Below are positions 1-47,590 of a stretch of 64,000 nt of DNA, piece by piece. Source of the stretch: Rebecca billardiae RCC1528. Lineage: Eukaryota > Protista > Haptophyta. How positions within the stretch are numbered: the first letter of the stretch is position 1; every line of letters starts with the position of its first letter. A program made the position numbers and the translations under genes. A model generated the notes under the pieces. It was not told the origin of the DNA. It saw only the letters and a program-made list of their open reading frames with translations, and made no database searches. The stretch lies in NCBI GenBank assembly GCA_965240325.2, contig OZ251227.1:992001-1056000 (forward strand), in the 5' to 3' direction.

Positions 1-1219
1 GGGGAGCTCGCACGGCGGGCCGCCCACGCCGGTCTCGCGCGCGCACTGCGCACGCGTCGTCGGCGTCGCGTACGCGCCGGGCGACTCGGTGCGCTTCGCC
101 ACCGTCGCCGACGACCTGACGATGCGCATCTGGAACGCGTCCGACTACTCGGTCGAGGTGCAGGCGCTCACGCGCGACGCGGGGCTGCCGCTCTGCATCG
201 CCTTCTCGGGGACGGCGGTGTTCGTCGGGTGGGAGGACGGGAAGATCCGCGCGTACGACGCGGACGACGGCGCGCACATCTGGGCCATCGACGAGTGCCA
301 CCGCGGCGGCGTCTCCTGCCTCGTCCTCTCGCACAACCAGCGCTTCATGTGCTCGGGCGGGCAGCGAGGCGAGGTGCGAGTCTGGGAGCTCAAGACGCGG
401 ACGCTCGTCTCCCACCTCGTCCAGCACGACGAGCCGGTGCGCGCGGCGGCGGGGGGGTCGCCCTCGGCGGGTCGCGCGCGCGCGCGCCACCTCCTGGCCG
501 TGCTCGCCCCCGCGCTCGGCATCGCGTTCATCGCTCGCGCCCGTCCGGACCTCGGCGCGAGCGTCGCCGCCCGCCTGACGCCGCGATGCCCGCGCGCGCT
601 CCGCGCGTGCGCGCCCGGCCGCCGCGCAGGTGAACGAGCTCGTGCTCTCAGACGACGACCTGCTGCTCTACTCGGCGAGTCGCGACCGCTCGTTCATCTG
701 CTGGGACCTGCGCGAGGAGAAGAGGCTCGTGACGAAATCGCAGAGCGCCGGCGGCATCAACGCGATCGTGCTGCTTCCGGCGCCCACGCCCGAGGCGCGC
801 GCACCGCGCCGCATGTGCTCTGCGCGCATTTGCTTTGGCTCCCGCGCTGACGCCGTGCCTGCTCCGCCGCTGCCCGCACGTCGCTCGCGCCCGCGCAGAA
901 GCAAGTGTACGTGATGAGTGTCGGCCAGGAGAAGATGCTCACCTACTGGGACATGCGGCAGAACTCGCCGCTGAACAAGGTCCCGATCGGCAAGGAGCAG
1001 ATGTGCATCGCGGCCTCGTCCAACGGCAACGTGGTCGCGTTCGGCGGCGTGGACAAGATCGTGCGGCTGTACGACACGCTCGAGTACTCGCCGCTGGCAG
1101 AGTGCATCGGCCACTCAGACGCCATCGTCTCGATCAAGTTCAGCCCAGACGACCGCCAGATCGTGTCGACAGGTGCGGATGGATGCATCTTCGTCTGGAA
1201 CGTGTACTTCGGCGCGTAA
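1..1219 (+). CDS. WD40-repeat protein, 3' part (CFAP52/WDR16-like); exons <1-436, 630-779, 899-1219
   Basis: Successive WD repeats (DLTMRIWN, DGKIRAYD, GEVRVWE, DRSFICWD, DKIVRLYD, GHSDAIV...DGCIFVWN) in three frames join in phase via introns 437-629 (GT-AG) and 780-898 (GC-AG). Start lies upstream of the window. Confidence 0.85.
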
Positions 1220-2038
1220 GGACTAAGGAGCCGTACTATTCGGCGTCGTAATAACGTCTGAGCAATCAGACTGTGCCGCCTGCCGAGTGCGAGTGCGGGT
1301 AGTCGGCGTTTCGATGACGACCGGCCGTTGCCACCTGGCGGCGCTAATTGAATATATTATTATAAACTAGCTATATATACATATTATGATCGGCTACGCC
1401 GATCTTCGGGTAGTAAACAACGAAGTTGAGGGCGCACGGCCCTACTGGTATGCAATAGTCGTCGCGTTCTTCACCGAATGACGATGCGCGCGCCCGGCGC
1501 GTCGCCGTGCAGGAGGCGCGGGCGCGAGTAATCGACGCGGTCGACGGCCCGGGCCTCGGGGGGCTGCGCCGCCTGTCGAACTCGACGCGCAGCAGCCGCA
1601 GCGCCTCCGCCCGGTGCGCATCGGGCAGCCCTGTTGTCTGTGGCCGCGCGCAGCGCGGAGATCGCGCTCGGCAGCTCGCCCGTCTCAGCCTCGCACAGCC
1701 TCGCGCGCTCGGCGGGATCGGCGCAGCGTCGGACGAGCTCGCTGCGGGGAAGAGCGTCGCGAGCAGCCGCGGCTCGAGCCTGTCTATCTACGACCTCCCG
1801 CAGCCGCAGTAGCCGCTCCTTGCACGCCTTTGTCTGTCAGGCTCGCCGCCGCGTCGATGCACTCGGTGCGAGGGCCGCTGCATGGCTGTGCGCGTCGGTG
1901 CCGCCGCGGGTGCTGTCGGCCGACGGCCCGGAGCGCGAGGACTACTGCGAGCACGGGCGAGAGGGGAGCACGGCGTCGCCCGTAGCATATGCCAACTCGC
2001 CATCATCGCGGGCTCGCCGCTCGCAGATCTAAGCCTGT

Positions 2039-2668
2039 GGCTCTCGTGTCAGGCACGGTCAGGCATCCGTCGAGTGAGCGCCAGAGCCCCTCCTCACGGT
2101 CAGCGCGCGGCTCGCGCGCCAAATGCTTGCCGCGCCGCCATGCGCAGCCGTCAGCACGCCGCACGCGGCTCAGCCATCACAGCTCGGCCATGGTCATGGA
2201 CGGCGCGAGCGTGAGCGGTGAGGGTTGGGCGAGCGACTTCTGAACATGCCGAGAGCCTCAGCTGCGCGGCGTGCGGCGTGGCGCGCGCGGGCGCGCGAAT
2301 GGTCAGCTACGAGCCGGTCGACAACGGCCGCGTTCGTGCGACCGAGTGACGACGGCTCTCGTGTCAGGCACGGTCAGGCATCCGTCGAGTGAGCGCCAGA
2401 GCCCCTCCTCACGGTCAGCGCGCGGCTCGCGCGCCAAATGCTTGCCGCGCCGCCATGCGCAGCCGTCAGCACGCCGCACGCGGCTCAGCCATCACAGCTC
2501 GGCCATGGTCATGGACGGCGCGAGCGTGAGCGGTGAGGGTTGGGCGAGCGACTTCTGAACATGCCGAGAGCCTCAGCTGCGCGGCGTGCGGCGTGGCGCG
2601 CGCGGGCGCGCGAATGGTCAGCTACGAGCCGGTCGACAACGGCCGCGTTCGTGCGACCGAGTGACGAC
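2039..2668. repeat. Tandem duplication, 2 x 315 bp
   Basis: ggctctcgtgtcaggcacggtcagg... starts at 2039 and again at 2354; the copies appear identical. Confidence 0.9.
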
Positions 2669-8803: not shown

Positions 8804-11029
8804 ATGGAAACCCACGCGGCGCGCGAGCGCGGCGAAGTGTCATGGCGCTGGCGCCGCACACTGTTCGTCGTGGCGATAGGTGTTGTGGCCACTCTCGCAT
8901 GCGTGGCACTCCTGCCGCCACGGTCTGCCCCCTCCGCCGCACAGGCGCAAGAGATTGAGAAGGTGGAAGCCGGCTGGGCATTCACAGCGCGTGAATCCCA
9001 GCACGATCGTGATGGTGACGATGACGACGACAATGATGACGAGGACTACGTCGAAAACGATAGTGACATCTTTGTGACGCCGTGGAACGACGAGTACGGC
9101 CATACGCAGCACATGCACACATTTCGCGGGTCGCGCCACCGCATCCGCGACGATTACGATTACGACGAGGATGATGATGACGACGACAACGTTGACGACG
9201 ATGGCGACATCTTTGCGGTGGCGGTAGACGACGCGTCCGACCACACCGAGCACGAGCACGCACATCGAGAGCGGCCGCACCGCCACCGCGATGCCGATGA
9301 CGACGATGACGACGAGGGCGGGCACGCCCACCGCCATCGCCGTAACCGCACGGAGCACGCCGAGCACCAGCACGTGAGCCGTGTGCACCACGAGCGCGCT
9401 GACCACCACCACGAACACGTCAGCCACCAGCACGAGCGCGAGCCCCGCACGCACCACGAGCACGTCAGGAATGAGCGCGAGCCGCGCGAGCCGCGCGAGC
9501 CGCGCGAGCCGCGCACGCACCACGAGCACGTTCGGCGTGAGCGCGAGCCGCGCGAGCCGCGCGAGCCGCGCGAGCCGCGCACGCACCACGAGCACATACG
9601 GCGTGAGCGCGAGCCGCGCGAGCCGCGCGAGCCGCGCGAGCCGCGCGAGCCGCGCGAGCCGCGCGAGCCGCGCGAGCCGCGCGAGCCGCACACGCACCAC
9701 GAGCACATTCGGCGTGAGCGCGAGCCGCGCGAGCCGCGCGAGCCGCGCGAGCCGCGCACGCACCACGACCACCACCGCCGCCACGGCGTGGACGAGGAGA
9801 TCGAGCTCGAGGGCGACGAGGGCGAGCGCGAGGCCGTCACGGCCAACAACGAGCACGAGGGGCGCGAGCACCACATGAGCCGCGAGGAGCGCCGCGCCGA
9901 GCGCGACGCCTCGGCCCACCACCACCACGAGCACGGCATCATGCGCAACCCCGGCCCGGCGGTCGAGATCGGCGCAGAGGCGGAGTACCAGAAGGCGAGC
10001 GAGCTGCTCGACCGCGCGGGGCGCGAGGCGCTCGAGGGCAACGGCGCGGGCGTGTCGACGGAGCCTCTGAGCAGGCACTCGACGGCGACGCTCTCGACCA
10101 TCGTCGTCGAGCCGTGGATGACCAACCGGCGCTTCACGCCCTTCAACACGCTCGGCGCCATCATCGCGCACGTGCCGTCGGCGCCCGAGACGGACGAGCT
10201 GCAGCTGTGGCTGCCGGGCACGTATGCGCGCTGCGTGCTGTACTCGACGCTGCTCAAGTTTGTCGCCGCGCGCGGCGTGCCCGTCCTCTGCCTCGCGTAC
10301 GACAACCGCGTGGAGGTCCAGCACATGGCCCGCTCCAACTGGAGCAGCGCGTTCCCCGACTCATACTACGACCTGCGGATGCAGCAGTACAACGGCTCGG
10401 TGTCGGACGAGCCGTCGAACAACATCGAGACGCGGCTGACCGACGCGCTCAGCTACCTGCACATGCACTTTGCGGACGTCTACCCGCGCTGGAGCACGTT
10501 CCTCTCGCCCGACGGCGCGCGGCCCGAGTGGACGCGCATCCGCGTCGCCGGCCACTCGCAGGGCGCGGGCGCGGCCGGCTTTATCGCCTACCTCAACGAC
10601 GTGCCGCGCGCGACGTGGTTCGGAGGCGTGTGCGACAGCTCGTTCTGGACGCTGAAGGCCCCGCGCGCCACGCCCTCCGCCCGGCTGTACGCGCTCGCCC
10701 ACACGCTCGACACGTTCATCTGCCCGTGGAGCGTCGTGCAGGAGGGCAACGGCACGCTCGGCTTCGGCTCGTGGCGCAACTCGGGCGCTGCGCCGGACGG
10801 CTCCACCACGTTCATCGGCGAGGACAACGCGACCGAGCCGCTGCGCACCAACACGATCGTGTCGACGATCCGCCCGCCCAAGTGCTCAGCGCGCGAGGCG
10901 GCGAAGCCCAACGGCTGCTACTTGCAGGCCCACGACGCGGGCGCCATCGATGGCGACACGCTGCGCAAGTACTACGAGCCGAGCGTGTGGCCGCACCTCT
11001 TCGGCGTGCGCGCGGACCCCATCCCGTGA
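8804..11029 (+). CDS. Membrane-anchored alpha/beta hydrolase with Asp/His-rich and (REP)n N-terminal region
   Basis: N-terminal TM; D- and H-rich tracts; 9-bp gagccgcgc repeats; C-terminal domain with WLPGT oxyanion-like motif and nucleophile elbow AGHSQGAG. Confidence 0.8.
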
Positions 11030-11624
11030 GGCGTGAGCTGCAGCCCGCACAGCCGCAGCCAGCTTGAGCTTCGCACGGATGTACTGCCCTGCTGCCTTGG
11101 CGCGACGGTGGCATCAGCAGAGGCGGCGATCGATGTATGGCCTGACGAATGACGAGCGTCGTCCATCCGCGAGCCGCCTGGTACGTGATGAGGCCGGATT
11201 GATGGCCATCATCGCGACTCGCAAGCCGGCGCTTATACTATTCTCGGCCGTCGATTATGGGGGTACTGCTCGATATGCTCATCATGCTGCTGATGACTAC
11301 ACTATACAGCGCTATAATGGCCCGCGGACGCGGTGCAGGGCGGAGCGCGCAGCGTGGAGCCCGCTCTGCGGGCCCTAACCCCGTTTCAAAAAGATCTTTG
11401 ATATCAAGAAAAGGGGGACGGGGGGCGATTTTTACGGGGCGGCTGGCGGAGCAGACCGAGTTTCATTTTTTGAGACGCTCTTTAGACACGCATTACGGAG
11501 AAATGGACGCGCCCGGGACGAGATTCCCCTATTCAATCGTGGACGGCCGGGCGTGAGAGCTCACTAACGGGCTTGATTAATAGTGTGCAGTTGGACGGTT
11601 ACAAGTTTGATACAAACATCACCC

Positions 11625-12741
11625 CCTTGGACGCGCGCTCCAGGCGCTACTCGAAGACGAGTCACAGACGCTGCTTATTGCTCGTTTACTATCGCTCGAT
11701 CGTTGCTGATCGGACGACGATATGATATATGCAGCGTAGTTGAACGCGCCGCGACATTGCTGAGACGTGCCGTCGTCATCGAGCATCGTCGTGTTACGAC
11801 TCGTGCGCGCAGTATGAATTATCATCATCATCACTGCTGTACGCAGTATCGTCTGCTGAGTGCTGGCCGCGCGGGCGGACCACGTGCTCCCTCCGATCGA
11901 TGCCGCGCGCGCTTCAGTCCGGGGTGTTATTCGTAGCAGCAGCAGCTAGTAGTTCCTCGGCCGGATGGTGTCGTTTTTTGGGATGATGATCGTCATCTCG
12001 ACAATGAGTGTAGCAGTGGCGTAGTGCGGTGTGGAATCACAGCGTGCCAGTGACGGCGCTGAGCGCGCGCTCGCACGCCTCCAAGTAGCGCCGACTGAGC
12101 CCATGGTGGCCAATACAACGACGAGCATCCGATGATAACGCCTACGCGGTCGAGTAGCAGTAGCATCATTATCAGTCATCATCAGTCGCGTCGTAAAATT
12201 ATCTGACGACAGCGGGCGAATAACCGCGCCACGTCCACGACGACGCTGTCACTGTGACTACTCCTTGGACGCGCGCCCCAGGCGCCACTCGAAGACGAGT
12301 CACAGACGCTGCTGCTTATTGCTCGATGATGACTATTGCTCGATCGTTCGGCTGATGGGACGACGACGATATGATATATGCAGCGTAGTTGAACGCGCCG
12401 CGACATTGCTGAGACGTGCCGTCGTCATCAGCATCGTCGTGTTACGACTCGTGCGCGCAGTATGAATTATCATCATCATCACTGCTATACGCAGTATCGG
12501 AGCGTCTGCTGAGTGCTGGCCGCGCGGCCGCCGGACCACGTGCTCCCTCCGATCGATGCCGCGCGCGCTTCAGTCCGGGGTGTTATTCGTAGCAGCAGCT
12601 AGTAGTTCCTCGGCCGGATGGTGTCGTTGTTATTTGGGATGATGATCGTCATCTCGACAATGAGTGTAGCAGTGGCGTAGTGCGGTGTGGAATCACAGCG
12701 TGCCAGTGACGGCGCTGAGCGCGCGCTCGCACGCCTCCAAG
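11625..12741. repeat. Direct duplication (~460-480 bp) of the last ~16 codons and 3' flank of the Men fusion gene
   Basis: ~11625-12086 matches ~12263-12741, including ...gaatcacagcgtgccagtgacggcgctgagcgcgcgctcgcacgcctccaagt (stop region of the fusion ORF). Confidence 0.85.
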
Positions 12742-15700
12742 TCGACGTGCGCGCCGTCGACGAGGCTCTCGAACGGGGGTGCGAGCACGTCCTCCTCGAG
12801 CGAGCTGTACGTGTTCAGGCCGTGGCACGCGTACGCGCCCTCGTCGGAGGCGCCGGCGGCCCCCACGAGCGCCTGCGCCACGCACGCGAGGTGGGAGAGC
12901 CCCACGCCCGACTCGAAGGCCGAGCTCACGACGCACTTGGCGCCGTTGGCGCGCGCGCGCCGCGCGAGGAGCCGGCACGGCGCGAGGCCTCCGAGCAGCG
13001 TCGGCTTGATGACGTACGCGGCGAGGCCGTCGGCGGCGCTGAGCTCGAGGAGGGCCGCCGCGTCCGCGCTCGGCGCGCGCGGCTCGCCCGGCCGCGCACC
13101 CGCCTCCGGCGCGCCGCTCGGCTGCGCGACGAGCTGCTCCCACGCCGGCACGAGCGACTCGTCGAGCGCCCAGCGCATGCCTGTGAGCGCGTGCAACCTC
13201 GGCAGCTCCGCGGCCGCCTGCAGCGGCTCCTCGATGTACTCGACCGCCGCGGGGTGCTCGAGCGCGCGCGCGAAGGCCACCGCCTCCGCCAGGCTCCACG
13301 TGCGGTTCGCGTCGAGGCGGAGCGCGCACGGCGCGCGGCGCAGCGCGCGCGCCGCTTCGTTCACGCGCGCCGCCTCGAGCGCCGGCGGCTGGCGCCCGAT
13401 CTTGAGCTTGAACGATCGGAAGCCCTCGCGCCACAGCGCGAGGAGCTCGACGCCGATGCCGGAGGCGTGGAGCGGCGCGCGCGGGGGCGTGGGCGGGAGC
13501 GCGGCCGCGCCGCTGTCCGCCTCGACGCCACTGCCGACGTCCGGCGTGGGGGCGGTGCCCGCGGACGGCTGCGCGGCCGAGCGGGCGTGCGACGCGGCGG
13601 CATCGGCCGGAGGGGCAGAGGGCACGGCGCCGCGCGCGCCCGGCGGCGGCTGCGCGGGCGGCGGCCTTGGCTGCAGCAGCAGCGCGTTGAGCGTCACGCT
13701 CGAGGCCACGCTCGGCGTGGCGCACGCGCCCGCCGCGCCGCGCGGGCCGGCGCTCGGTGCGCGCGCGGCGCTCGGGGGCTCGGCGGAGGCAAAGGTGGCG
13801 CACAGCAGCCGCGTCAGCGCGAGCGGGCCGGGGCTACGGGCGGCCGCCTCGGCGCCGGAGCTGCCGTCCGGCGGCGGCGTCGCGCTGAGCAGCTGGCACG
13901 CTGCCTGCTGCACCGCGCAGCGCGCGGACGGCGGCAGCTGCAGCCGCGCGGCCGTGGGCGCGTCGAAGGGCCAGCAGTGCAGCTCGGCGTCGGACAGCTC
14001 GGCGGAGGGCCAGCTCACGCGCGCGCCGCGCAGCGCGGCGGCTGCGCGCTGGAGCGCCGCGTGCGCGTCCGCCGCACCCTCGGCGTGAAAGCCGGGCAGC
14101 GGCGATGCCTCGCCAACGCCCCGTGCGCGGCGGCCGACCGGCGCGTCGGGCGCGCCTGCCGCCGAGGGGGCGGCGGCTTCGGACGCCGCCTCGAGCACGA
14201 GCAGCGAGCCGCGCCGGCTGAGCAGCTGGCCGCCGCGCGCGAGCGTGAGTGGCGCGCGCAGCCGCAGCTCAAAAGGGCGCACGCGCGCGCTCGCGATCTG
14301 CGCGGAGAAAGGCGTGGCCGGCACGGGCGGCGCGGGGCTGGGCGCGAGCGGTGGCGAGTCGGCGTGCGCCGCGCCGCCGCGCACGGCTTTGCCCGCCGCC
14401 GCAGCCGGCGCGCGCACGGCCCGCAGCAGGGCGCACAGCTCGCGCGCCACCGCGGGCGCCGCCTCGGTGAGCACAGCGTGCCCCGACTCTGCCACCGCCA
14501 CGCACCGCACGCCGCCAGCCGGCATGGGGGCGGGGGGCGGGGTGTGCGCCGGCGCGGCGCTCGGGCGCGGCGGCGCGCCGGCCTCGGAGCCGAGCACCTC
14601 GCCCAGCCGCGCGCCGATGGCGGCGTACTTGCCGTCCTCCGCGCCGTGCACGTACAGCAGGCGAACGCCCGCGGCACGGAGCTCGCCGCTCGCCAGCCAC
14701 TGCCAGCTCGAGGGCGCGCGGCCCGGGCTGAGGGCGCGGAGCACTGAGGCGGTGCGGCGGGGGCAGGCGTGGAGGCGGCGGGCGAGCATGCGCGCGTACG
14801 CGCGCGCGCGCTGCTCGGAGCGCAGGCGCGGGCCCCACACGCCCAGCGAGTACCACTCGTCCAGCGCCGCCGCCCACAGCGCCGGGCAGTCGGCGGCGGC
14901 GAGCGCGCTCGCGCGGCGCGCGTCCGCGTCCGCGCGCTCGGCGCGCGCCGCGTCCGCCTCCGGGCCCGGGTCCCCGCCGAGCAGCGCGAGGCCGACGAGC
15001 CGGACGTGCTGAGACGCAGACGCCGGCCCCGCCTCGCCGCCCGCGCCCGACTCCGCGCTCGCGCTCAGCAGCCGCTGCGCCGCGTGCAGCGCGACGCGTG
15101 CGCCGAGGCTGTACCCCACCAGCACGACGTCATGGCCCGCGCACACGCGCCGCAGCAGCGCGCACACGCTCGCCGACGTGCCCTCCATCGTGGGCAGGAG
15201 CGCCTCCTCGTCGGCGCGCGCGGCGGCGCCGCCGCCGCGCCGCGCCGCGCGCGCGCCCGGCCCGACGGCCAGGCCCGACGGCTGCGCCGCCGAGTGCGCG
15301 CCGCCGAATCCGCCCAACGTGCCCTCGGCGGCGGAGGGCGCGCCGCACGGCGCGGCGTCGGCGGTGCGGTGTGGCGCCCACCGCGGCGTGCGGCCGTGGC
15401 CGGGCAGATCGATGCAGAGCGTGCGCAGCTCGGCGTGCGCGGCGTGCGCGCCGGCGAGGCCCGAGCCCGCCTCCGCCCCGAGCTCGGCGCGCACCATCCC
15501 CACCACCTCCGCCCAGTCCGCCGCGCAGCCAAACTGCCCGTGCACGCACGCGAGCGCGAGCGGACGCGCGGAGCCGCCGCGGGCGGCGCGCGGCGGCGGC
15601 TCGAGCGGGGCGAGGAGCGAGGGCGAGGCGCTCCACGCGAGCCGCGCGCCACGCGCCGCGGCGCGCTCGACCGCGCGCCGCGCCGCGGCCGCCAGCCGGC

Positions 15701-18700
15701 CGTGCAGCGGCGCGACGTCGGAGCGGCGCGTGCGCACCTCGAGCAGCGCGCACCCGCCGTGGGCGCGCGCCGAGCGCACCGCGCGCGCGTACGCGTCGTC
15801 CAGCTCGCCCAGCGTGGCCGCGGCGCAGTGCGCCAGGCCGAAGGCGGCGCAGAGCGCGGAGAAGTCCACGGCGTGCGGCGAGTCGAAGTACGGCGTGAGC
15901 AGCTCCGGCCGCGAGCCGATCGGCAGCATCGAGAAGATGCCGCCGCCGCCGTTGTTCACAATCACCACGACCAGCGGGCACGCGGCCGCAGCCGAGGCGC
16001 TCGCGAGCGTGTGCAGCGACGACGCGTCGTGCAGTGCAGAGACGTCGCCGAGCAGGAGGGTGGTGCTGCGCGCGCGGCCGCCCCGCGCGTACCCCGCCGC
16101 GGTCGCGAGCAGCCCGTCGATGCCGCTCGCGCCGCGGTTGGCCGCCGCGTGCACGCTGGACGTGTGCGCGCCGCAGGCCGCGCCCGGCGCGCGCGCGCCG
16201 CCCGCCGGCGGCTCGGCGCCGCTGGGGCCGGGGCTGGGCAGCGCGGAGGGCACGTGCGCGCCCGGCGCGAACATGTCGCACTCGCGGATCGGCATCGAGT
16301 TGCCCACGATGAAGCCGTCGCCCGGCGGCAGCAGCTGCAGCAGCCGCCGCGCCAGCAGCGGCTCAGACAGCGGCAGCTGCAGCAACGGCGAGCGGTCCGA
16401 GTCCGAGTCGGCGCGCGGCGCGGCGGCGGCGGCCCCGGCGCCCGCCTCGGCCTCGGCTGCCGGCGGCGGCGGCGGCGGCGTGGAGTGCGTCTCCGCGGCG
16501 TGCTCGCGCGCCGCGCGCAGCATCTCGCGCTCCACCTCCGCCTCCACCTCGGCGCACACCGCCTGCAGCGGCAGCAGCGCGCTCGGCTGCGGCAGCGCGG
16601 CCCGGAGCACCGCGTCCACGCCCATCACAATCTCGGCGGGCGAGCCGACCACGCGCAGCGTCACCGAGTGCGCGGGGTCAAGCCTCTCGCCGCCGCGCGC
16701 GACGAGGGCGTGCGCGCGCGCGCCGCACTCCGCGAGGAACGTGGCGGTGCGCTTGGACACGAGCCGCGTGCCGAACTGCAGCAGCACGTCCGGCGCGGCG
16801 CCGAAGCGCGCGATCGGCGAGTGGAGCGCAAGGTCCCAGCAGCCGAGCAGCGGCGCGCGAGACGCGCCGCCGTCGAGCCGCAGCCCAGAGGTGATGTCGG
16901 CGACGAGCGGCCATGCAATCATGCGCGCGAGGAGGCTCACCGCCTCGCGGTCGCGCTCGTCCGGCAGCGAGCCCGCCACGATCAGCCCGCGCCGCGCGCT
17001 GCGCACCAGCGCCGCCAGCGCGTACACAGGGTCGGACGGATGCGCGGGGGGCGCAGCCGAGCTGCCGACTGCGTGCGCGCACGCCGCGTGCCGCTCGCCG
17101 ACGGCGCCGGCGGAGCCTGAGCCGTCCAGTCGGAGGTGGAGCTGCACCGAGGGCGTCGCCGCCCCCGCCGCGTCGACGCCGTCGTCGTCGTGCCGCCCGC
17201 CCGCCGCGTCGAGCGCGTCGCGCGCGCCCGCGCGCTCGGCGGCGGCCGCATCCGCCGCGTCGGCCGCTGCGGCAAACGCGCGCGCGGCCGCGTGGCTGTG
17301 CTCGGCGTGCACGCGCTCGGCGGCCGCGCCGGCGGCGACGGCGGGCGCGTGCACGGTGAACGGGCGGCGCGAGCGGAGCCACGCCTGCACGCGCTCGCCG
17401 CGCAGGCACGCCGCCGCGTCCCACGCCGTCGCAGCGAACGGCTCGAGCGGCTCTCTGAACATGCAGTTGAGGTGGACCGGCCCCGACGCGCCGTGCGCGT
17501 GCGCCGCGTGCAGCGCGCTGTCCACGTCTGTGAGCAGCGAGCGCAGCCCGAGGGAAGTGCCGTCGGGCGGCGGCACGTCGACGAAGCGCCGCGCGTACGC
17601 GCCGAACAGGTGCACCTGGTCGATCGCCTGGTTCGCCCCCGCCGCGCGCAGCTCGGGCGGCCGGTCGGCCGTGAGCAGCAGCAGCGGCACGCGCTCCGCG
17701 CTCGCCTCGACGGCGGCCGGCAGCAGATTCGCCACGGCAGTGCCGGAGGTGACGACGACGGCGGCGGCGCGGCCCAAGGCGCGCGCGTACCCGAGCGCGT
17801 AGAACGCGGCGGAGCGCTCGTCGTGCACCACCACCGTGCGCACGCCCGCGTGCGCCGCGGCCGCCGCCGTGATCGGCGTCGAGCGCGAGCCGGGGCAGAT
17901 GACAAACAGAGCCACCCCGTGCCGCGCACACTCCTCCACCAGCGCGCAGCCGTGCAGCGCGTTCGGGCTCGGGAGCGAGGCGTACTGCAGCGGCGGGGCG
18001 AAGAGCGCGCGGAAGTTGCGCATCTTGTCCGCGCACTCGCCGAACTCCGCGTCCGCGTCGCTGCCGCGCACGATCCCCGCCCCCGCGAACAGCAGCAGCC
18101 GGCGCGGCGCGCGCAGCAGCGCGGAGCGGATCGCCACGCAGAAGTCGGCGCGGCCGCGCGAGATGTAACCGAACGGGCCGGAGTACCAGCCGCGGTCTGA
18201 AGGCTCGAGGCTGCGGATCAAGTCGCGCGCGACGAGGTGCGGCTGCCCGCACACCGCCGGCGTCGGGTGCAGCAGCGACACGAGCTGCAAGGCGGCGCGC
18301 ACCGAGCGCCGCCGATCAGGGACAGCAGTGCTGTCGCCGCCGCCAGCGCCGGCGCCGCCGCCGGCGCCGCCGCCGCGCTCGCCGGCGTGCTCGCCCGCGT
18401 CCTTGCCGTCGGCGAGCTCGTCAGCGGCGCTCCCGTTCGCGCGGCGCTCCTCCGCGCCCGCCAGCGCGTGCTCCGCGCGCAGCGTCCCCGCGAACGGCGC
18501 GTACAGGTGCTGCACGTGCCGCAGCCTGAGCAGCTGCGGCGCGTCGGGGCCGGCGACGCGCGCGCACACCGCGCCCAGCCTCTCTCGCACATACGTGCGG
18601 ACGGAGGCGTTCTCCGCCTGCTCCTTCGCCGAGCCGAGGAGCTCGTCCGCGAGGCGCGCGTCCTCCGCCTCGGTCGCGCCGCGCCGCCGCGTGCCCGCCA

Positions 18701-18838
18701 CCGCCTCCGTGCGCACCGCCGCGCCCTCCGCCACGAAGAGCCGCTCAGGCGAGCAGCCGAGGAAGGCCGCGTGCGCGCTGGGCTGCAGGCAGAAGAGAGA
18801 GCCGTGACGCTCGGCGGCGCGGGGGCGGAGGCCGCCGC

Positions 18839-18870
<32 letters not shown>

Positions 18871-19718
18871 GCCGCCGCCCCGCCGCCGCCGTGCTGCGCC
18901 CCCCCGCCGCCGCCGCCGTGCGCGGAGGCGGAGTTGGAGGCGGAGTTCTCGCTCGAGAAGTCGAGGATGGCGCTCAGGATGTCCAGGGGGTCTGCCTCGT
19001 CAGAGAGCGTGCAGAGCGTGCGGCGGGAGAGCACCGCCTTGGTCGCCTCGCCCGAGTCGAACGCGCGGAAGACCGCCTGCACGCTCGCGCGCCACTCCTC
19101 GCGGCTCGTCACCTCGTCCTCGCGCTCCACGCTGGGCAGGTGCGCCGCGCTCGCTGAGGCGGAGGGCACCGCGCCGTGCACCGCGCGCAGCGCGCCGCAG
19201 CGCGCGCGCTCCCAGCTCGCCTCGGACGCGGGGTCCCAGCGGAGGTGGCACGCCAGGTAGCTGCGCCCGTCGTGCGACTGCAGCTCGACGGCCGGCAGCA
19301 CGAAGCGATATGCCCGGAACTCCGCCCAGTCGGCGTCGGGCGCGCTCTCGGCGTCAAAGCGCGCGCCGCCGATCAGGCGCATCCGCTCGTGCCACGCGTC
19401 GACGGGCGGCCAGTGCGGCGCGTCCGGGTCGACGGGCCCGTCCCCGCTCACTGAGACGCACTCGCCCACCCCCGCCACGCACACCGAGAGCGTGCGGTTG
19501 CGGAAGTACACGCGCGGGTACGAGTGCTGCAGCCGCAGCCAGAAGATCGGGTCGATCTCGTGGCCGCCGAGCTCGACCTCGATGCGCAGGTAGCCGAGGT
19601 CGCGCGCGCACGAGGGTGGCTGTGTGATCTCCGCCACCGCGTCGTGCAGCAGGCGGTGCGCCTTCCACAGTGGCAACGCGCCCGGCGCGTGCACCGCCAC
19701 GCACGGAGGCTGTGCCAT
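12693..19718 (-). CDS. PHYLLO: PHYLLO-like multifunctional phylloquinone/menaquinone enzyme: MenF-MenD-MenH-MenC
   Basis: MenF: LHPTPAVCG, RGWYSGPFG, VAIRSAL, AGAGIV. MenD: CPGSRSTP, DERSAAFYALG, TSGTAVANL, TADRPPEL, NSMPIR, NRGASGIDG, GDVSALHD, NNGGGGIF. MenH: HGQFG, DLPGHG, GYSLGAR, EDGKY, SGHAV. MenC: GEASPLPG, FKLKIG, LRLDAN, YIEEP, ALDES, IKPTLLGG. Single ORF from ATG 19718. Confidence 0.95.
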
Positions 19719-20588
19719 GGCGCACTCGCGTCCGTGCGTGCAGTCGCGAGAATCTGGAGCCAATACTGTAGCTGCCAATAGCGTATGTAATTTGCGCCTG
19801 ATTATGGGCTCGCGCGAAGTCGCGACGAGGCCGCGTGGCCATCGTCCGCGGTCTTCGCTCGCGCTTCGTGAAAAAGCGCGCGAATGCCAACGGCCTTTTC
19901 TTCTCGCGAATTCAACATGACGCGGATAAATGCAAACCGAGGCCCCAGCCCCCCACTGGCGAGCGCAACGGTGACAACGTACTCGTATGCCGCCGCCGCT
20001 ACTGTGGCCGAGTGGGAGTACTGGCGTGCTCTTGCGTCTGATGTCATGGGTTCAAAACCAGTTTCCAGGTCTCTCTTCGGAGAGCGTGCGATGAAGGATG
20101 GCGCGGCAACCTGCCACCGTGAGCCTTACGCACGTCATAATAAAACAAATAAACTGTAGCAGTGCAAATTACTACTGAAGTCTAAGTACTATGACGCTGA
20201 GCACTAGAACGCGCGCGTCAGTCGCATCCGCAACGGCACGCGATCATCCTGCGCGAGCACCTAGTTCAGGGAGAGAGAGAGAAGACTGCGCAGCGGCTTG
20301 CATTTGCAAGCAAGGCGCGTGAGGCTGAGGGCCCAATGGCTGCGTTGTCCCGGCCTCGCGTGATGATGATGCCAGCACATCCGACATCGGACGTACCGCT
20401 CAGCAAGATAGCGCCGATAGACGCACGCCGACACGAGAGAGCGAGCACACCGGCGGCGAGTGGGCGCCGACAGCCGCCTTCCGACGATGTACACTGGTAG
20501 CCGCTATCAGCCGCCTCACAAACTGCGTTGGCTGGCGGCGTCAACCCGGGAGGCGGGAGGCGCCACGCTGCCAGCGGCTCAGAGCCAC

Positions 20589-21485
20589 TCACTTCTTGGC
20601 CTTGCCCGAGCGCGTGCGCTTCACGGCGCGCATGCCACCGTCGCCGTCGGCCGCGGCGGCATCCCTCACCATGTCCAGGAAGTGCGCGTGCCACGTCAGA
20701 TCGTCCGTGAGCTCGGGGTGGAAGGCGGTCGCCAGCAGCGGGCCCTGCTGCACGGCGACAATAATCTGCGCGCCGTGGCTGCTGCTCGGCGCGCCCTCCG
20801 GGCAGAGGCCGGTGGTCTGCTCCTTGCAGCCGACCTGGTGCTCCTTGAGCAGGGCCGCCTCGCGCTCGTCCGCCTCGAGAGTCGCCAGCACCGACACGCC
20901 CTCGTTCGCGCGGAGCACGGCGGGCGCCCGGATGAAGACGTGCGTGTACGTGCCGTCGCTGTTGGCGCTCTTCGGGCAGGTGGTCGCGCCGTCCGCGCCG
21001 TGGCCGGCGCGCTGCAGCGACACGCCGCTCGCGAGGCGCACCGGGCGCTCAGCGCTGTCGATCTGCCTCCCGAAGAAGTTGCGGTGCACGAGCACGTTCA
21101 GCCCGCCGATGACGGACTGCCCGCCCTGCTTCTGCCCGGTGACCTCCTCGGAGAGAAAGATGAGGCCAGCGCACGTGCCAAAGACCGGCCGGCCCGACGC
21201 GACGAATGCCCTGAGGGGCTCGACCAGGTCGAGGGTGCGGGCAACGATCGCCATCGTCGTCGACTCACCACCGGGGATGATCAGCCCGTCCAACTCCGGG
21301 CGCAGGTCAGATGCTTGCCGGACCTCTGTGCAGCGCGCGCCAAGCCGGCCGAGCGCGTGCGCGTGCTCGACAAAGGCGCCCTGCAGCGCGAGCACGCCAA
21401 TGTGCGGTGCGTCGTCGGCGATCAGACCCCCGGCCTTATCCGGGAGCAGATTCTTCAGCCTGGGCACGGCGTCGCTCGCTGCCAT
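20589..21485 (-). CDS. PDX2: Pyridoxal 5'-phosphate synthase glutaminase subunit
   Basis: IGVLALQG, IIPGGESTT, FGTCAGLI, RNFFGRQ, FIRAP, AFHPEL motifs. Confidence 0.95.
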   Translation of the reverse strand: MAASDAVPRLKNLLPDKAGGLIADDAPHIGVLALQGAFVEHAHALGRLGARCTEVRQASDLRPELDGLIIPGGESTTMAIVARTLDLVEPLRAFVASGRPVFGTCAGLIFLSEEVTGQKQGGQSVIGGLNVLVHRNFFGRQIDSAERPVRLASGVSLQRAGHGADGATTCPKSANSDGTYTHVFIRAPAVLRANEGVSVLATLEADEREAALLKEHQVGCKEQTTGLCPEGAPSSSHGAQIIVAVQQGPLLATAFHPELTDDLTWHAHFLDMVRDAAAADGDGGMRAVKRTRSGKAKK

Positions 21486-21805
21486 GGTGTTCGAGGGATC
21501 ACGGGAAAAACGCACGTGGACGGGTAGGGACGGCCCTGCTGCCACAGCGCGTCGCACGCGCTCAACCACGCGGTGTGGGCGGCAACGTGGGCGCAACTAC
21601 TGTAAGGAATGACCAACGTGTTCAGACTGCCTTCGGGAATCTCGGTCAACCAGGTCGAATCAACGCGCACGGGCTCGGAACGATGGCGGCAGGCACGGCC
21701 ATCCGCGCCTAATCCAACAGGAGCTGATCTGACCCATCCGTGCGCGACGCCCGGCGACGGTCCCCCGTCGAGCGCGACGCACTTCTGTGCCGAGGCGATG
21801 CCTAT

Positions 21806-43796: not shown

Positions 43797-45363
43797 TCAC
43801 AATGCGGAGCCAGAAGCTGACTGCGCACCTGGTGTGGGCGCGCGCGCTGGCTCTGGCTTGGGCTCAGCCGCATCGTCGCCGCCCGCACCGGCGGGGGGCA
43901 TGGGGTGCGAGATGGCCGTCGCCTCCGCGCACGTCGCCATCGGCTGCTCTGTCGCCGACGCCAGCCTTGCCTTGACCGCCTGCAGCTCGCGCTGCTGCTC
44001 CTTGAACGCCTCCTTGAGGCTGGTCAGAAGGGTCTGCTTCTCCGAGAGCTCCGAGATCAGGTTGAGCTTGTTCTTGTTCCTGCGAAGGGGAAGGGTGGGC
44101 GGGCGTGGGTGGGCATCGCGGGGCGCGCGCAGGTAGGATGCGCTGAGCTCGCGCGGCCTTCGGCACTGGGCGCACGCCCTGCCGCGCGGCGAGGCCCCGC
44201 GGAGCGGCGCGCGCGCGCGCGCACCACTCGCTGAGCGACAGCTTGTGGCTCTCGCGCAGCGCGGTCAACCTCGTCTCCTTCTCCGCCACCTCCTGCCGCA
44301 GCTCGGCGAGCTTCCTCGACTTCTCTGCAAGCGACTGCTGATGCGAGTCACGCAGCGTCTGGATGTACGCGTCCTTGTCCGCAAGGAGCTTGTGTAGCTC
44401 GGCGACAGTACCGGCTCCGGTGCTACCAGGAGGCGGCGGAGGCGTCGCCGCGCTCGTCTCCGCCTCGGCGCCGTCCGCGGCCGCGGGGGCAGGCCTGCCG
44501 TCGGCCGCGCCCGCGTCGCCGCGGCTGACGCTGCCTCCGCCGCCGGTCGAGCCCGCAGCGCCGCCTGCCGCCTCGCGCAGTGCGCTGAGCTCGGCTCGCG
44601 CTGCGCTCAGGCTCTCCTCCTTGCGAGCCAGCTCACGCCGCAGCGAGTCCGCCTCTGCTCGCGCGGCCGCAAGCGCCTCGCCGCCGGCGGAGGAGGACGC
44701 GCCGCCACCTCCGCCCCCGCCGCCTGCGCCGGTTGACGCGCCAGCGGGGGTGCTCGCCATGTCGGCAGCGCCCGCACCAGCCTTGGCTGGCGTGCGCGGC
44801 GTGCGCTGCGCCGACCGATCGCCGTCGAACCGCTGCTCGTCGAAGCGCGAGTCGATGTCTGAGTGATGGTTCCGCACGTCGGCCACGCTGCCTGCGTACC
44901 GAGGACCGCGGCCGCCTTTCGGCTTCCACGAGCCGGCGCCCACCCCTTCCCTCTCACGCTCGCGCTCGCGCTCACGCTCACGCTCACGCTCGCGCTCGCG
45001 CTCGCGCTCGCGATCTGAGCCACGATCCCGCTCACGCTCGCGATCCAGTCCGCGCTCGCGCTCGCGTTCTCGGTCGCGGTCGCGCTCGCGATCGCTGGGG
45101 CGCCAGTCTCTGTCGCGATCGTCGCGGCCGTTCCTCGCGTCCCGGTCGATCTGCCGCCCATTGACGCGTTGGCGGGGCTCGTCGCTCCCGAAGCGCGAGT
45201 CGATGTCCTCCAACTCCGTCGGCGCCGGATGCTTTCGTTTTGCCGTCACGCCAGCTGCGGGCGCATCTTTATCGCTCGAGCTCGCTTTGCGCTTGCGCTC
45301 AGCGGAATCGTCACCGAAGCGCTCGTCGATGTCTGCAGACGCATTGTGCACGCGCCCCGCCAT
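43797..45363 (-). CDS. RE-dipeptide-rich coiled-coil protein; intron 44080-44224
   Basis: (RE)n tract and coiled coil; GT-AG splice restores SEW-NKNKLNLISELSEKQ... to stop at 43797; an acceptor-like cgcag just upstream means further 5' exons are possible. Confidence 0.7.
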
Positions 45364-45647
45364 CACCTGCGCCGGGCACCCGCCCGACCGCAGCGAGCGA
45401 GCTCACACGACACAGCCCGTGGCAGCGCCTGATGACGCTCCCGCGATGCAAGCCACTTGTTCGCCTCGGCGGGCGCGCGGAGATAGCAATCCCGAGTCCG
45501 ACCGGTACTTTACGTCCGGGTAGTTCGGTGGGCCCGGAACTTCATCACTCGTCAGGCACCAGCTCTCCTAACGGTACGGTTAACGCGCTGTCTTTGCGCA
45601 CTCGCGTCGCGCATCGGACATTTCACATTTGGCGCGTGGCCGTCGTG

Positions 45648-47590
45648 ATGTCGACTGCCCAGCAGGACGGGCGCAAGCCCGTGGTGAGCCTGCTCGACTA
45701 CGGCGCCGGGAACGTGCGCTCGGTGCGCAACGCGATCCGCGCGCTCGGTTACGAGGTGGTGGACGTGGAGAAGCCAGAGCAGCTCGCCGCCGCCGCAGTC
45801 CTTGTGTTCCCGGGCGTCGGCAGCTTTGGCGCGTGCATGGCTTTCCTCGCAGAGAAGGGGTTCCTCGAGCCGTTGCGCGAGTACGTGCGCGCGGACAAGC
45901 CATACCTGGGCATCTGCCTTGGCATGCAGACCCTGTTTGAGGGCTCCGAAGAGACCCCCGGTGTGGCTGGGCTCGGCGCACTGCCCGGGATGGTCCGACG
46001 GTTTGAGGCTGGCACAGCGCTTGCCGTGCCGCAGATCGGGTGGAACGGGATCTCGCCGTACAAGCCGTCGCCCGCGCTCGAGGGCGTGGGATCCGAGGAG
46101 TGCGTTTACTTCGTCCACTCCTTCCACGTGCCGCTCCAGCCCGAGCTGCACGAGTGGATCCTCACGACCACGACGTACGGCGTCGACTACGTGTCGGCCG
46201 TGCAGCGCGGCAACGTGATGGCCGCACAGTTCCACCCGGAGAAGTCGGCGAAGGTCGGGCTGCGGATCCTCGACAACTTCTTGAAAGGTGTCGGCTCGCC
46301 GGGCGGCCGCGCCGGCGCGCCGCCCACGCCGCCCCCCACGCCGGTGCGGACCGTGCCGCGCAAGCGCGTCGTCGCGTGCCTCGACGTGCGCACGAACGAC
46401 GCGGGCGACCTCGTCGTGACCAAGGGCGACTCGTACAACGTGCGCGAGGCGGCGGACGACGGCGCGAAGGGCGCGGTGCGCAACCTGGGCAAGCCCGTTG
46501 CGCTCGCCTCGCGCTACTACGCCGAGGGCGCCGACGAGATCACCTTCCTCAACATCACCGGGTTCCGAGACTGCCCCCTCGAAGACTTGCCGATGCTCGA
46601 GCTGCTGGTCGCGGCGAGCGAGAAGCTCTTCGTGCCGCTGTGCGTGGGCGGCGGGATCCGCGACTTCGTGGACTCGAAGGGCGCGAAGCACTCCGCGCTA
46701 GCCGTCGCCTCTGCCTACTTCCGCGCAGGCGCGGACAAGGTTTCCATCGGCTCCGAGGTGAGTCGAGCACCGTGCCGCTGCACACGGCGGGGCGCCTGGC
46801 GCGCGCGCGTGCTGCGCGCGGGCGCCGCCTACGATCGCGAGCTGACGGCACGCCGTGCGACCCCCTCCGGCCGCCGCACGGCCTGCGGCGTCGATGATGC
46901 GCAGGCCGTCCAAGCTGCCAAGGCGTACTGGGCGCGGGGCGCGACGCCCACCCCGTCGGGCGAAGAGCCCTCCTGCATCGAAGCGATTGCGCATGTGTAT
47001 GGCAGGCAGGCTGTGGTCATCTCCGTCGACCCGAGGCGCGTGTGGGTTGCGGACGTGGCGGCGGCTGGGGCGCACGCGCCGGCGTGCGTGACCGAGCCGC
47101 AGGGCGCGCACGGGCCGTCGGGCGAGCACCACTGCTGGTACGAGTGCACGATCAAGGGCGGGCGCGAGGGCTCTGACCTGGACGTGCTGCAGCTCGCGCG
47201 CGCGTGTGAGGCGCTCGGTGCAGGCGAGATTCTGCTCAACTCGATCGACGCGGATGGGCAGAACTCGGGATTCGACATTGCGCTCGTGTCGATGGTGAGG
47301 CGCGCCGTCTCGATCCCCGTGATTGCATCGAGTGGCGCAGGCAAACCCGAGCATTTCTCCCAGGTCTTCGCCCAGGCCGATGTCGAGGTGTGTGCGTCGT
47401 TCCGCGCTCGTCACGTCACGTGCTGCGCCGCGCGCCGAGTGCGCCGCGCCTTACCATGCGTGTGCCGATCCACGCGCCGGCCGATCACCTTCAGGCTGCT
47501 CTGGCCGCGGGCATTTTCCATCGCGAGGAGGTCGCCATTTCTCAAGTGAAGGACCACCTTCGGGAGAGGGGCGTGCCGTACCGGCCATGA
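45648..47590 (+). CDS. HIS7: Bifunctional imidazole glycerol phosphate synthase HisHF; introns 46758-46904 and 47388-47494
   Basis: DYGAGNV, FPGVGSF, GICLGMQ, YFVHS, QFHPEKS (HisH); ACLDVR, VGGGIR, GADKVSIG, GEILLNSID, IASSGAG, ALAAGIFH (HisF). Confidence 0.95.

Follow-up and report, generated by a model that had tools for sequence, protein, structure and literature searches.

How a reading frame holding several enzymes of vitamin K1 synthesis acquired its present order of modules, and whether it corresponds to one working gene, are the questions raised by the locus studied here. The locus lies in a stretch of 64,000 nucleotides (hereafter, the window), whose listing of open reading frames (ORFs) gives it as one open frame of 2341 codons. 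In an initial annotation, it was taken for a PHYLLO-type polyprotein leading from chorismate to o-succinylbenzoate (OSB), with its modules in the reaction order MenF-MenD-MenH-MenC (F-D-H-C). This order was proposed to result from a rearrangement or from an independent assembly, possibly from a different bacterial operon donor, and channelling of intermediates was put forward as a possibility. OSB is the compound from which the naphthoquinone ring of phylloquinone, a cofactor of photosystem I, is made.

The modules were mapped using Pfam and NCBIfam models, together with profiles purpose-built from relatives (Table 1). A Chorismate_bind / isochorismate synthase region reaches residue 575 (TIGR00543, 268.6 bits for a cut-off of 224.75) and MenD is matched by the Pfam and NCBIfam models at residues 592-1340 (TIGR00173, 354.4 bits for a cut-off of 244.2). 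Next come an alpha/beta hydrolase of the MenH type at about 1425-1706 and an MR_MLE_C / o-succinylbenzoate synthase region at about 2094-2322, both with scores under the curated equivalog cut-offs (TIGR03695, 77 bits for 208.55; TIGR01927, 116 bits for 130.55). The assignment of MenH and MenC to their families therefore rests on motifs and kinship; such scores are, as expected, unsurprising in divergent modules laden with inserts. The purpose-built profiles locate F at residues 28-575, D at 585-1344, H at 1511-1705 and C at 1818-2333. Thus, the uninterrupted four-module frame and its order, as first described, are borne out by Pfam, NCBIfam and purpose-built profiles alike, and the boundaries proposed at that stage match the profile-based DNA coordinates to about 100 bases.

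Table 1. Features of the PHYLLO-type locus, in coordinates of the window.
Feature	Position	Residues	Strand	Basis
Complete PHYLLO-type CDS	12693..19718		-	ORF, domain profiles, G+C step at both ends
MenF, isochorismate synthase	17994..19682	~13-575	-	profiles, alignments
MenD, SEPHCHC synthase, thiamine-diphosphate enzyme	15687..17966	585-1344	-	profiles, alignments
MenH, SHCHC synthase, alpha/beta hydrolase	14454..15566	~1385-1755	-	profiles, alignments
MenC, o-succinylbenzoate synthase, enolase superfamily	12720..14336	~1795-2333	-	profiles, alignments
Upstream spacer, PHYLLO start codon to PdxT stop	19719..20588		-	G+C 0.54-0.66

The recognisable catalytic motifs attributed to each module were also confirmed. 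All the catalytic residues that were checked are intact and their columns are invariant or nearly so among 61-72 relatives. MenF keeps Lys227, Glu325 and the E558/E561/K565 motif. MenD keeps Arg612, Glu634, Arg686, Asp1225 and Asn1255/1256, and retains the thiamine-diphosphate motifs (E634 and GD...NN). In MenH, an HG motif is found at 1393-1394 and the triad Ser1537-Asp1695-His1747 is retained, the three columns being conserved in 62/62, 61/62 and 54/62 sequences, respectively. MenC keeps Lys2104/Lys2106 (KxK), Asp2136, Glu2164, Asp2186 and Lys2238. These assignments agree with alignments to the solved MenC and MenH of E. coli, to B. subtilis MenD (2x7j, 243 bits) and to Arabidopsis ICS1 (8w6v, 172.7 bits), the best solved relative of MenF. 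Large low-complexity inserts occur in all four modules, such as residues 256-302 and 423-471 of MenF, which are specific to the window protein, and residues 800-885 and 1071-1094 of MenD. [quoted passage not shown] Module content and order support a chorismate-to-OSB polyprotein, as was suggested; from these features we infer the enzyme activities and that they are expressed on one polypeptide.

With G+C at about 80%, long frames arise easily: across the same region, the other frames contain many overlapping ORFs of 300-870 aa. Hence, the length of the ORF is not the evidence for the gene. What counts as evidence is that a single frame carries four homologous modules and that their order matches that of 98 database relatives. 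G+C is 0.73-0.85 within the frame and 0.54-0.64 directly beyond each end, with sharp steps at 19720 and 12693, so that the coding block has the same extent as the ORF. Between 19778 and the stop codon at 12693-12695 the frame is uninterrupted and, read from its first ATG at 19718, predicts a protein of 2341 aa. Inspection of the coding sequence revealed no in-frame stop, no frameshift and no recognisable intron. P0001 and P0039, the closest relatives, are likewise single uninterrupted ORFs on eukaryotic contigs.

A first alternative is that the ORF does not represent one gene, either because it hides introns, because a 5′ leader exon has gone unseen or because at least two transcription units share the frame. 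The scarcity of stops and the many long spurious ORFs at this G+C content are in line with such a view, and in-frame introns might conceivably lie within the Gly/Ala inserts of low complexity. Moreover, no stop interrupts the frame over another 91 codons ahead of the first start codon, and the N-terminal extension of most relatives is absent: 23 residues precede the MenF core, versus a median of 127 in the F-D-H-C relatives (lengths derived from profile-envelope offsets, an earlier regular-expression motif search having matched 8 proteins only). However, the four modules occupy one frame over 7 kb without a stop, with the order and spacing of single-ORF relatives, and the sharp drop of G+C at 19720 and 12693 argues against close-by coding exons. 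In addition, the open upstream stretch has no Met, and no ATG, GTG or TTG beyond the TTG at 19778. By inspection, neither this stretch nor the N-terminus contains a signal-peptide-like or hydrophobic segment. A signal-peptide exon sought by eye in 19779-20588, before the neighbouring gene PdxT, gave nothing convincing. A split, intron-bearing or 5′-extended gene is thus considered improbable. From the sequence, the gene is real and apparently intact, a fusion of the four enzymes with which vitamin K1 synthesis begins.

Module order was surveyed in 199 sequences, made of 198 database relatives and the window protein. MenH BLAST was too weak for mapping order and iterated profiles were used instead. 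A whole-length word search was swamped by low-complexity words (38 matches); P0001 and the MenF/MenD junction were better queries. The F-D-H-C order is the commonest architecture (99 of the 199 mapped sequences, including the window protein, in which MenH precedes MenC). It is held by at least five red-plastid lineages, with diatoms, Triparma, a brown alga, Vitrella and a dinoflagellate among its holders; named examples are Cylindrotheca, Epithemia, Mayamaea, Amphora, Triparma (two species), Scytosiphon, Vitrella and Durusdinium. The F-D-C-H order was found in 80 of the 199 sequences, every named one coming from a green alga or a plant; that plant PHYLLO is F-D-C-H, as stated in the initial annotation, agrees with the literature (Gross et al., 2008, PMC2412073). 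Diatom PHYLLO was described in the same study as menF-D-H-C with an extra C-terminal module (Gross, Meurer & Bhattacharya, 2008, PMC2412073). On the basis of the mapped sequences, F-D-H-C is the usual PHYLLO order in algae with red-type plastids. It is not new: it had already been reported from diatoms in 2008 (PMC2412073) and is common among the algal PHYLLO proteins mapped, which is what the initial annotation gave as grounds for rejecting its reading.

In a tree of MenF+MenD (LG+F+G4), the window protein falls within a 34-tip complex-red-plastid clade (aLRT 96.8 / UFBoot 96). Green PHYLLO proteins form a separate clade, and module order needs to change only a single time on the MenF+MenD tree. 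Under C20, it is grouped with F-D-H-C proteins (SH-aLRT 84). It is sister to Prymnesium parvum plus P0083 with moderate support (aLRT 85.7 / UFBoot 70), and its top identity to any relative, 45% over 977 columns, is also with Prymnesium. At nine diagnostic columns, the window protein is non-green at six and green at three. Its placement is not firm, the branch being long and compositionally biased. One could envision that F-D-H-C arose within this very lineage, through rearrangement of an F-D-C-H PHYLLO or fresh assembly from another bacterial men operon. The long branch leaves room for this, as does the AU test (IQ-TREE, LG+F+G4), which rejects neither a grouping of the window protein with green F-D-C-H proteins (p 0.34) nor one with non-greens (p 0.41). 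Furthermore, the MenH+MenC tree has no resolution and says nothing on the origin of MenH or MenC, and the trees held one bacterial sequence. However, such an origin is very improbable in view of the publication of F-D-H-C for diatoms, its occurrence in 98 other proteins, the single order change and the position of the window protein inside the red-plastid clade. Besides, MenC fits OSB synthase models of the gamma-proteobacterial type as well as E. coli structures, a type tied to canonical PHYLLO by Gross et al. (PMC2412073). The proposed new rearrangement or independent assembly of the polyprotein does not stand, and a different bacterial operon donor is not supported, MenF+MenD falling within the complex-red-plastid clade. 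The ORF is very probably the nuclear PHYLLO of an alga that is very rich in G+C and has a complex plastid of red type, most likely a haptophyte. Its F-D-H-C order would be inherited, as the standard one for PHYLLO of red-derived plastids, with the diatom C-terminal module missing.

A decaying or partly inactive copy with at least one dead module, comparable to the MenF stub of Arabidopsis PHYLLO, might be suspected from the size of the inserts in all four modules and from the low MenH and MenC scores, but it is extremely improbable because each checked catalytic residue is intact, stops and frameshifts are lacking, and profile searches of the genome gave neither another MenC-type match nor another one above the MenD cut-off that could take over, the remaining chorismate-binding matches falling under the isochorismate synthase cut-off. 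As an inherited PHYLLO, the polypeptide with its four modules would convert chorismate and 2-oxoglutarate into OSB, the steps after OSB being encoded at other places in the genome. A MenB (374 bits, above cut-off) with a C-terminal SRL, a predicted peroxisomal ending, and a MenA-like prenyltransferase were found in the same genome. The phycobilisome-linker model PF00427 has no match there, and a red alga of the Porphyra kind was discounted on that ground.

As for the cellular site of action that may be inferred from the protein ends, the short N-terminus does not agree well with import into a plastid bounded by four membranes. An unlikely scenario would have a leaderless chorismate-to-OSB enzyme working in the cytosol, beside a peroxisomal MenB, together with fusion or fission of PHYLLO among haptophytes (a four-module form versus the MenF-MenD-only form of prymnesiophytes). 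At the other end, 8 residues only follow the MenC module; no Pfam match occurs after MenC and the diatom-type START-like / COG5637 module is absent. G+C falls directly past the stop codon, at the place where a diatom-type module would lie.

The value of these observations is mainly one of annotation: the genome has an apparently complete and intact route to the phylloquinone ring precursor. A divergent protein, probably of the haptophyte lineage, is added to the F-D-H-C class of PHYLLO, and its missing N-terminal extension could be of interest to those studying plastid metabolism in complex algae, as could the splitting of the gene after MenD in Prymnesium parvum, the nearest named haptophyte.

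Comparison with known systems helps to situate the window protein. Nearest to its MenF+MenD are a protein of Prymnesium parvum, P0140 (AB1Y20_021152), and the metagenomic P0083. The identity with Prymnesium reaches 55% in the MenF/MenD junction region. However, the P0140 and P0083 genes end after MenD, whereas the window gene continues into MenH-MenC. When the Prymnesium locus was scanned with profiles in all six frames, no MenH or MenC was found up to 10 kb downstream, so that the four steps would not be on one polypeptide there; hence, PHYLLO architecture appears variable within haptophytes. PHYLLO of plants and green algae, as cited in PMC2412073, has the same modules and leads from chorismate to OSB (Gross et al., 2006). 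In the green lineage, MenC stands ahead of MenH in all 80 mapped proteins, the reverse of the window protein. The MenF of flowering-plant PHYLLO is a truncated stub, whereas that of the window protein is complete, with its catalytic Lys and Glu and Mg-binding Glu. The E. coli menFDHBCE operon encodes enzymes for these four reactions, likewise in this order, but as separate proteins and with menB between menH and menC. Residues K131, K133, D161, E190, D213 and K235 of E. coli MenC and S86 and D210 of MenH align to identical residues of the window protein, and His1747 occupies the position of MenH His232 in the alignment of relatives. Finally, diatom PHYLLO differs by a module of some 230 aa at the C-terminus (Polyketide_cyc / START-like, given as PF03364 or PF10604 in precomputed domain annotation), which the window protein does not have and which is found as a tail in 73 of the 99 F-D-H-C proteins. 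Overall identity with diatom PHYLLO is only about 30-35%, but the two proteins share the same four modules in the order F-D-H-C, each in one nuclear gene, and MenF+MenD place them in a common red-plastid clade.

The PHYLLO frame encodes, from its first ATG, a protein of 2341 residues in which Pfam and NCBIfam recognise four modules, in the order MenF, MenD, MenH and MenC (F-D-H-C), with the frame remaining open to 12693. The single ORF carrying these modules that had been proposed in the initial annotation is thus confirmed, and domain mapping shows the DNA boundaries then assigned to the modules to be correct to about 100 bases. The G+C content is 0.73-0.85 within the frame and 0.54-0.64 directly outside both ends, and the other frames contain many overlapping ORFs of 300-870 amino acids. 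At such a composition, long open frames come cheap. Therefore, the length of the ORF is not the evidence for a gene; the evidence is that four homologous modules share a single frame and follow an order common to many relatives.

Features of the PHYLLO locus, its surroundings and related loci
Feature	Position	Strand	Remarks
PHYLLO ORF	12693-19718	minus	frame open from 19778; first ATG 19718; stop 12693-12695
MenF, chorismate-binding / isochorismate synthase module	up to residue 575		TIGR00543, 268.6 bits (cut-off 224.75)
MenD, full three-domain thiamine-diphosphate module	residues 592-1340		TIGR00173, 354.4 bits (cut-off 244.2)
MenH, alpha/beta-hydrolase module			TIGR03695, 77 bits, below cut-off
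MenC, enolase-superfamily module			TIGR01927, 116 bits, just below cut-off
Upstream open stretch, 91 codons	19779-20051	minus	G+C only 54-62%
PdxT-type ORF	20589-21596	minus	TIGR03800, 172 bits, above cut-off
Hotdog thioesterase-type ORF, 322 aa	21806-22774	minus	TIGR02799, 62.5 bits, below cut-off
Fused HisH-HisF ORF (GATase + His_biosynth)	45240-47549	plus	N-terminal extension of about 150 aa
MenB ORF, locus L010 (G000:C15:912721-916494)	1477-2376	minus	374 bits, above cut-off
Prymnesium parvum homologue, locus L009 (CM083862.1)	10001-15804		MenF and MenD only

In alignments with solved structures and with 61-72 relatives, all the catalytic residues looked for are present. In MenF, Lys227 and Glu325, the general base and acid, are kept together with Glu558, Glu561 and Lys565. 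MenD retains Arg612 and Arg686, as well as Glu634, responsible for cofactor activation, and Asp1225 ... Asn1255/Asn1256, the metal-cofactor motif. MenH has its HG motif and Ser1537-Asp1695-His1747, and MenC has Lys2104, Lys2106, Asp2136, Glu2164, Asp2186 and Lys2238, corresponding to K131, K133, D161, E190, D213 and K235 of the E. coli enzyme. All four modules also carry Gly/Ala/Pro-rich inserts specific to the window protein (for example residues 256-302, 423-471, 800-885 and 2047-2093); such inflating inserts are typical of very GC-rich genomes. The gene is real and, as far as its sequence tells, functional.

The order of the modules was mapped with iterated profiles in the window protein and 198 relatives retrieved by three word searches. 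F-D-H-C was found in 99 of these 199 sequences, the window protein included, and F-D-C-H in 80; the others were F-D only (13), F-D-C (4), F-D-H (2) and D-H (1). Every F-D-C-H protein with a name belongs to a green alga or a land plant. Named owners of F-D-H-C are the diatoms Cylindrotheca, Epithemia, Mayamaea and Amphora, two species of the bolidophyte Triparma, the brown alga Scytosiphon, the chromerid Vitrella and the dinoflagellate Durusdinium. Gross et al. (PMC2412073) described this order for diatom PHYLLO in 2008, there with an extra module at the C-terminus. The order is therefore not new but already common among published algal PHYLLO proteins, which the initial annotation had named as grounds for rejecting its own reading. 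The closest full-length relatives (P0001 and P0039) are likewise single uninterrupted ORFs on eukaryotic contigs. That fusion in reaction order helps channelling is a fair speculation, but an old one. P0138, a partial PHYLLO-like MenF-MenD-MenH protein of Perkinsus olseni, a non-photosynthetic alveolate parasite, clusters with dinoflagellate-type F-D-H-C proteins.

It had also been suggested that the polyprotein was assembled independently. On the MenF+MenD tree, however, the F-D-H-C / F-D-C-H state changes only once. With LG+C20, the window protein lies within the non-green clade (SH-aLRT 84). An LG+F+G4 analysis with 1000 ultrafast bootstraps makes it the sister of a pair formed by Prymnesium parvum and a metagenomic relative (aLRT 85.7 / UFBoot 70); the three are nested in a clade of 34 tips from complex-red-plastid lineages (96.8/96). 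Moreover, it has the non-green state in 6 of the 9 columns separating green from non-green sequences. Some room for a separate assembly is left by the long, compositionally biased branch of the window protein, by the MenH+MenC tree, which did not resolve the branching, by an AU test under a simple model, which rejected neither the placement with greens nor that with non-greens, and by the inclusion of only one bacterial sequence in the trees. Altogether, independent assembly is unlikely, and inheritance of the order within the red-plastid clade is favoured.

The remaining steps of the pathway were sought in the genome (72 Mb, 41 contigs), where the PHYLLO locus is the sole MenC-type match and the sole match above the MenD cut-off. 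With MenB (naphthoate synthase) and a MenA-like prenyltransferase, these steps are present. As in plants, MenB has a peroxisomal ending of the PTS1 type, SRL; this part, the middle of the pathway, is therefore probably peroxisomal, as it is in plants. The ORF immediately upstream of PHYLLO is that of the glutaminase subunit (PdxT type) of pyridoxal-phosphate synthase, extended at its N-terminus by about 65 amino acids; the next one upstream matches YbgC/4HBT-type hotdog acyl-CoA thioesterases. In cyanobacteria and the cyanidialean plastid men cluster, such thioesterases perform the DHNA-CoA thioesterase step (PMC6189191), and this ORF could supply the missing step. This neighbourhood does not recur at the P0001 and P0039 loci. 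Elsewhere in the window are a homeodomain gene, a PI3/PI4 kinase and an ABCG-type transporter, which, with the fused HisH-HisF imidazole glycerol phosphate synthase gene, mark the genome as eukaryotic. A red alga was dismissed as the source, since a profile search of the genome found no phycobilisome linker gene. The affinity of the MenF+MenD part to Prymnesium parvum points instead towards a haptophyte.

Only 23 residues precede the MenF core, compared with 127 (median) in the relatives. The open stretch ahead of the first possible start codon may be due to chance, or belong to an unrecognised 5′ exon or UTR; neither a Met nor a hydrophobic leader was found in the N-terminus and this stretch. 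Unless the ORF lacks a 5′ exon, the protein would not follow the usual route of import into the plastid.

Compared with known PHYLLO proteins, the MenF+MenD core shows at most 45% identity to any protein in a collection of 5.8 billion. Prymnesium parvum provides its nearest named relative, but the Prymnesium gene ends after MenD, a six-frame profile scan of the 10 kb downstream detecting neither MenH nor MenC, whereas the window gene continues into MenH-MenC. PHYLLO was therefore split or fused within that lineage; the metagenomic relative P0083 (99 member sequences) likewise consists of F-D only. Of the 99 F-D-H-C proteins, 73 carry a tail of 150 amino acids or more, whereas the window protein stops 8 residues past MenC and lacks the C-terminal module of diatoms. 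Its MenC matches the gamma-proteobacterial OSBS type, the affinity that Gross et al. (PMC2412073) report for PHYLLO. The window protein is thus a divergent new member of the already known F-D-H-C class of PHYLLO.
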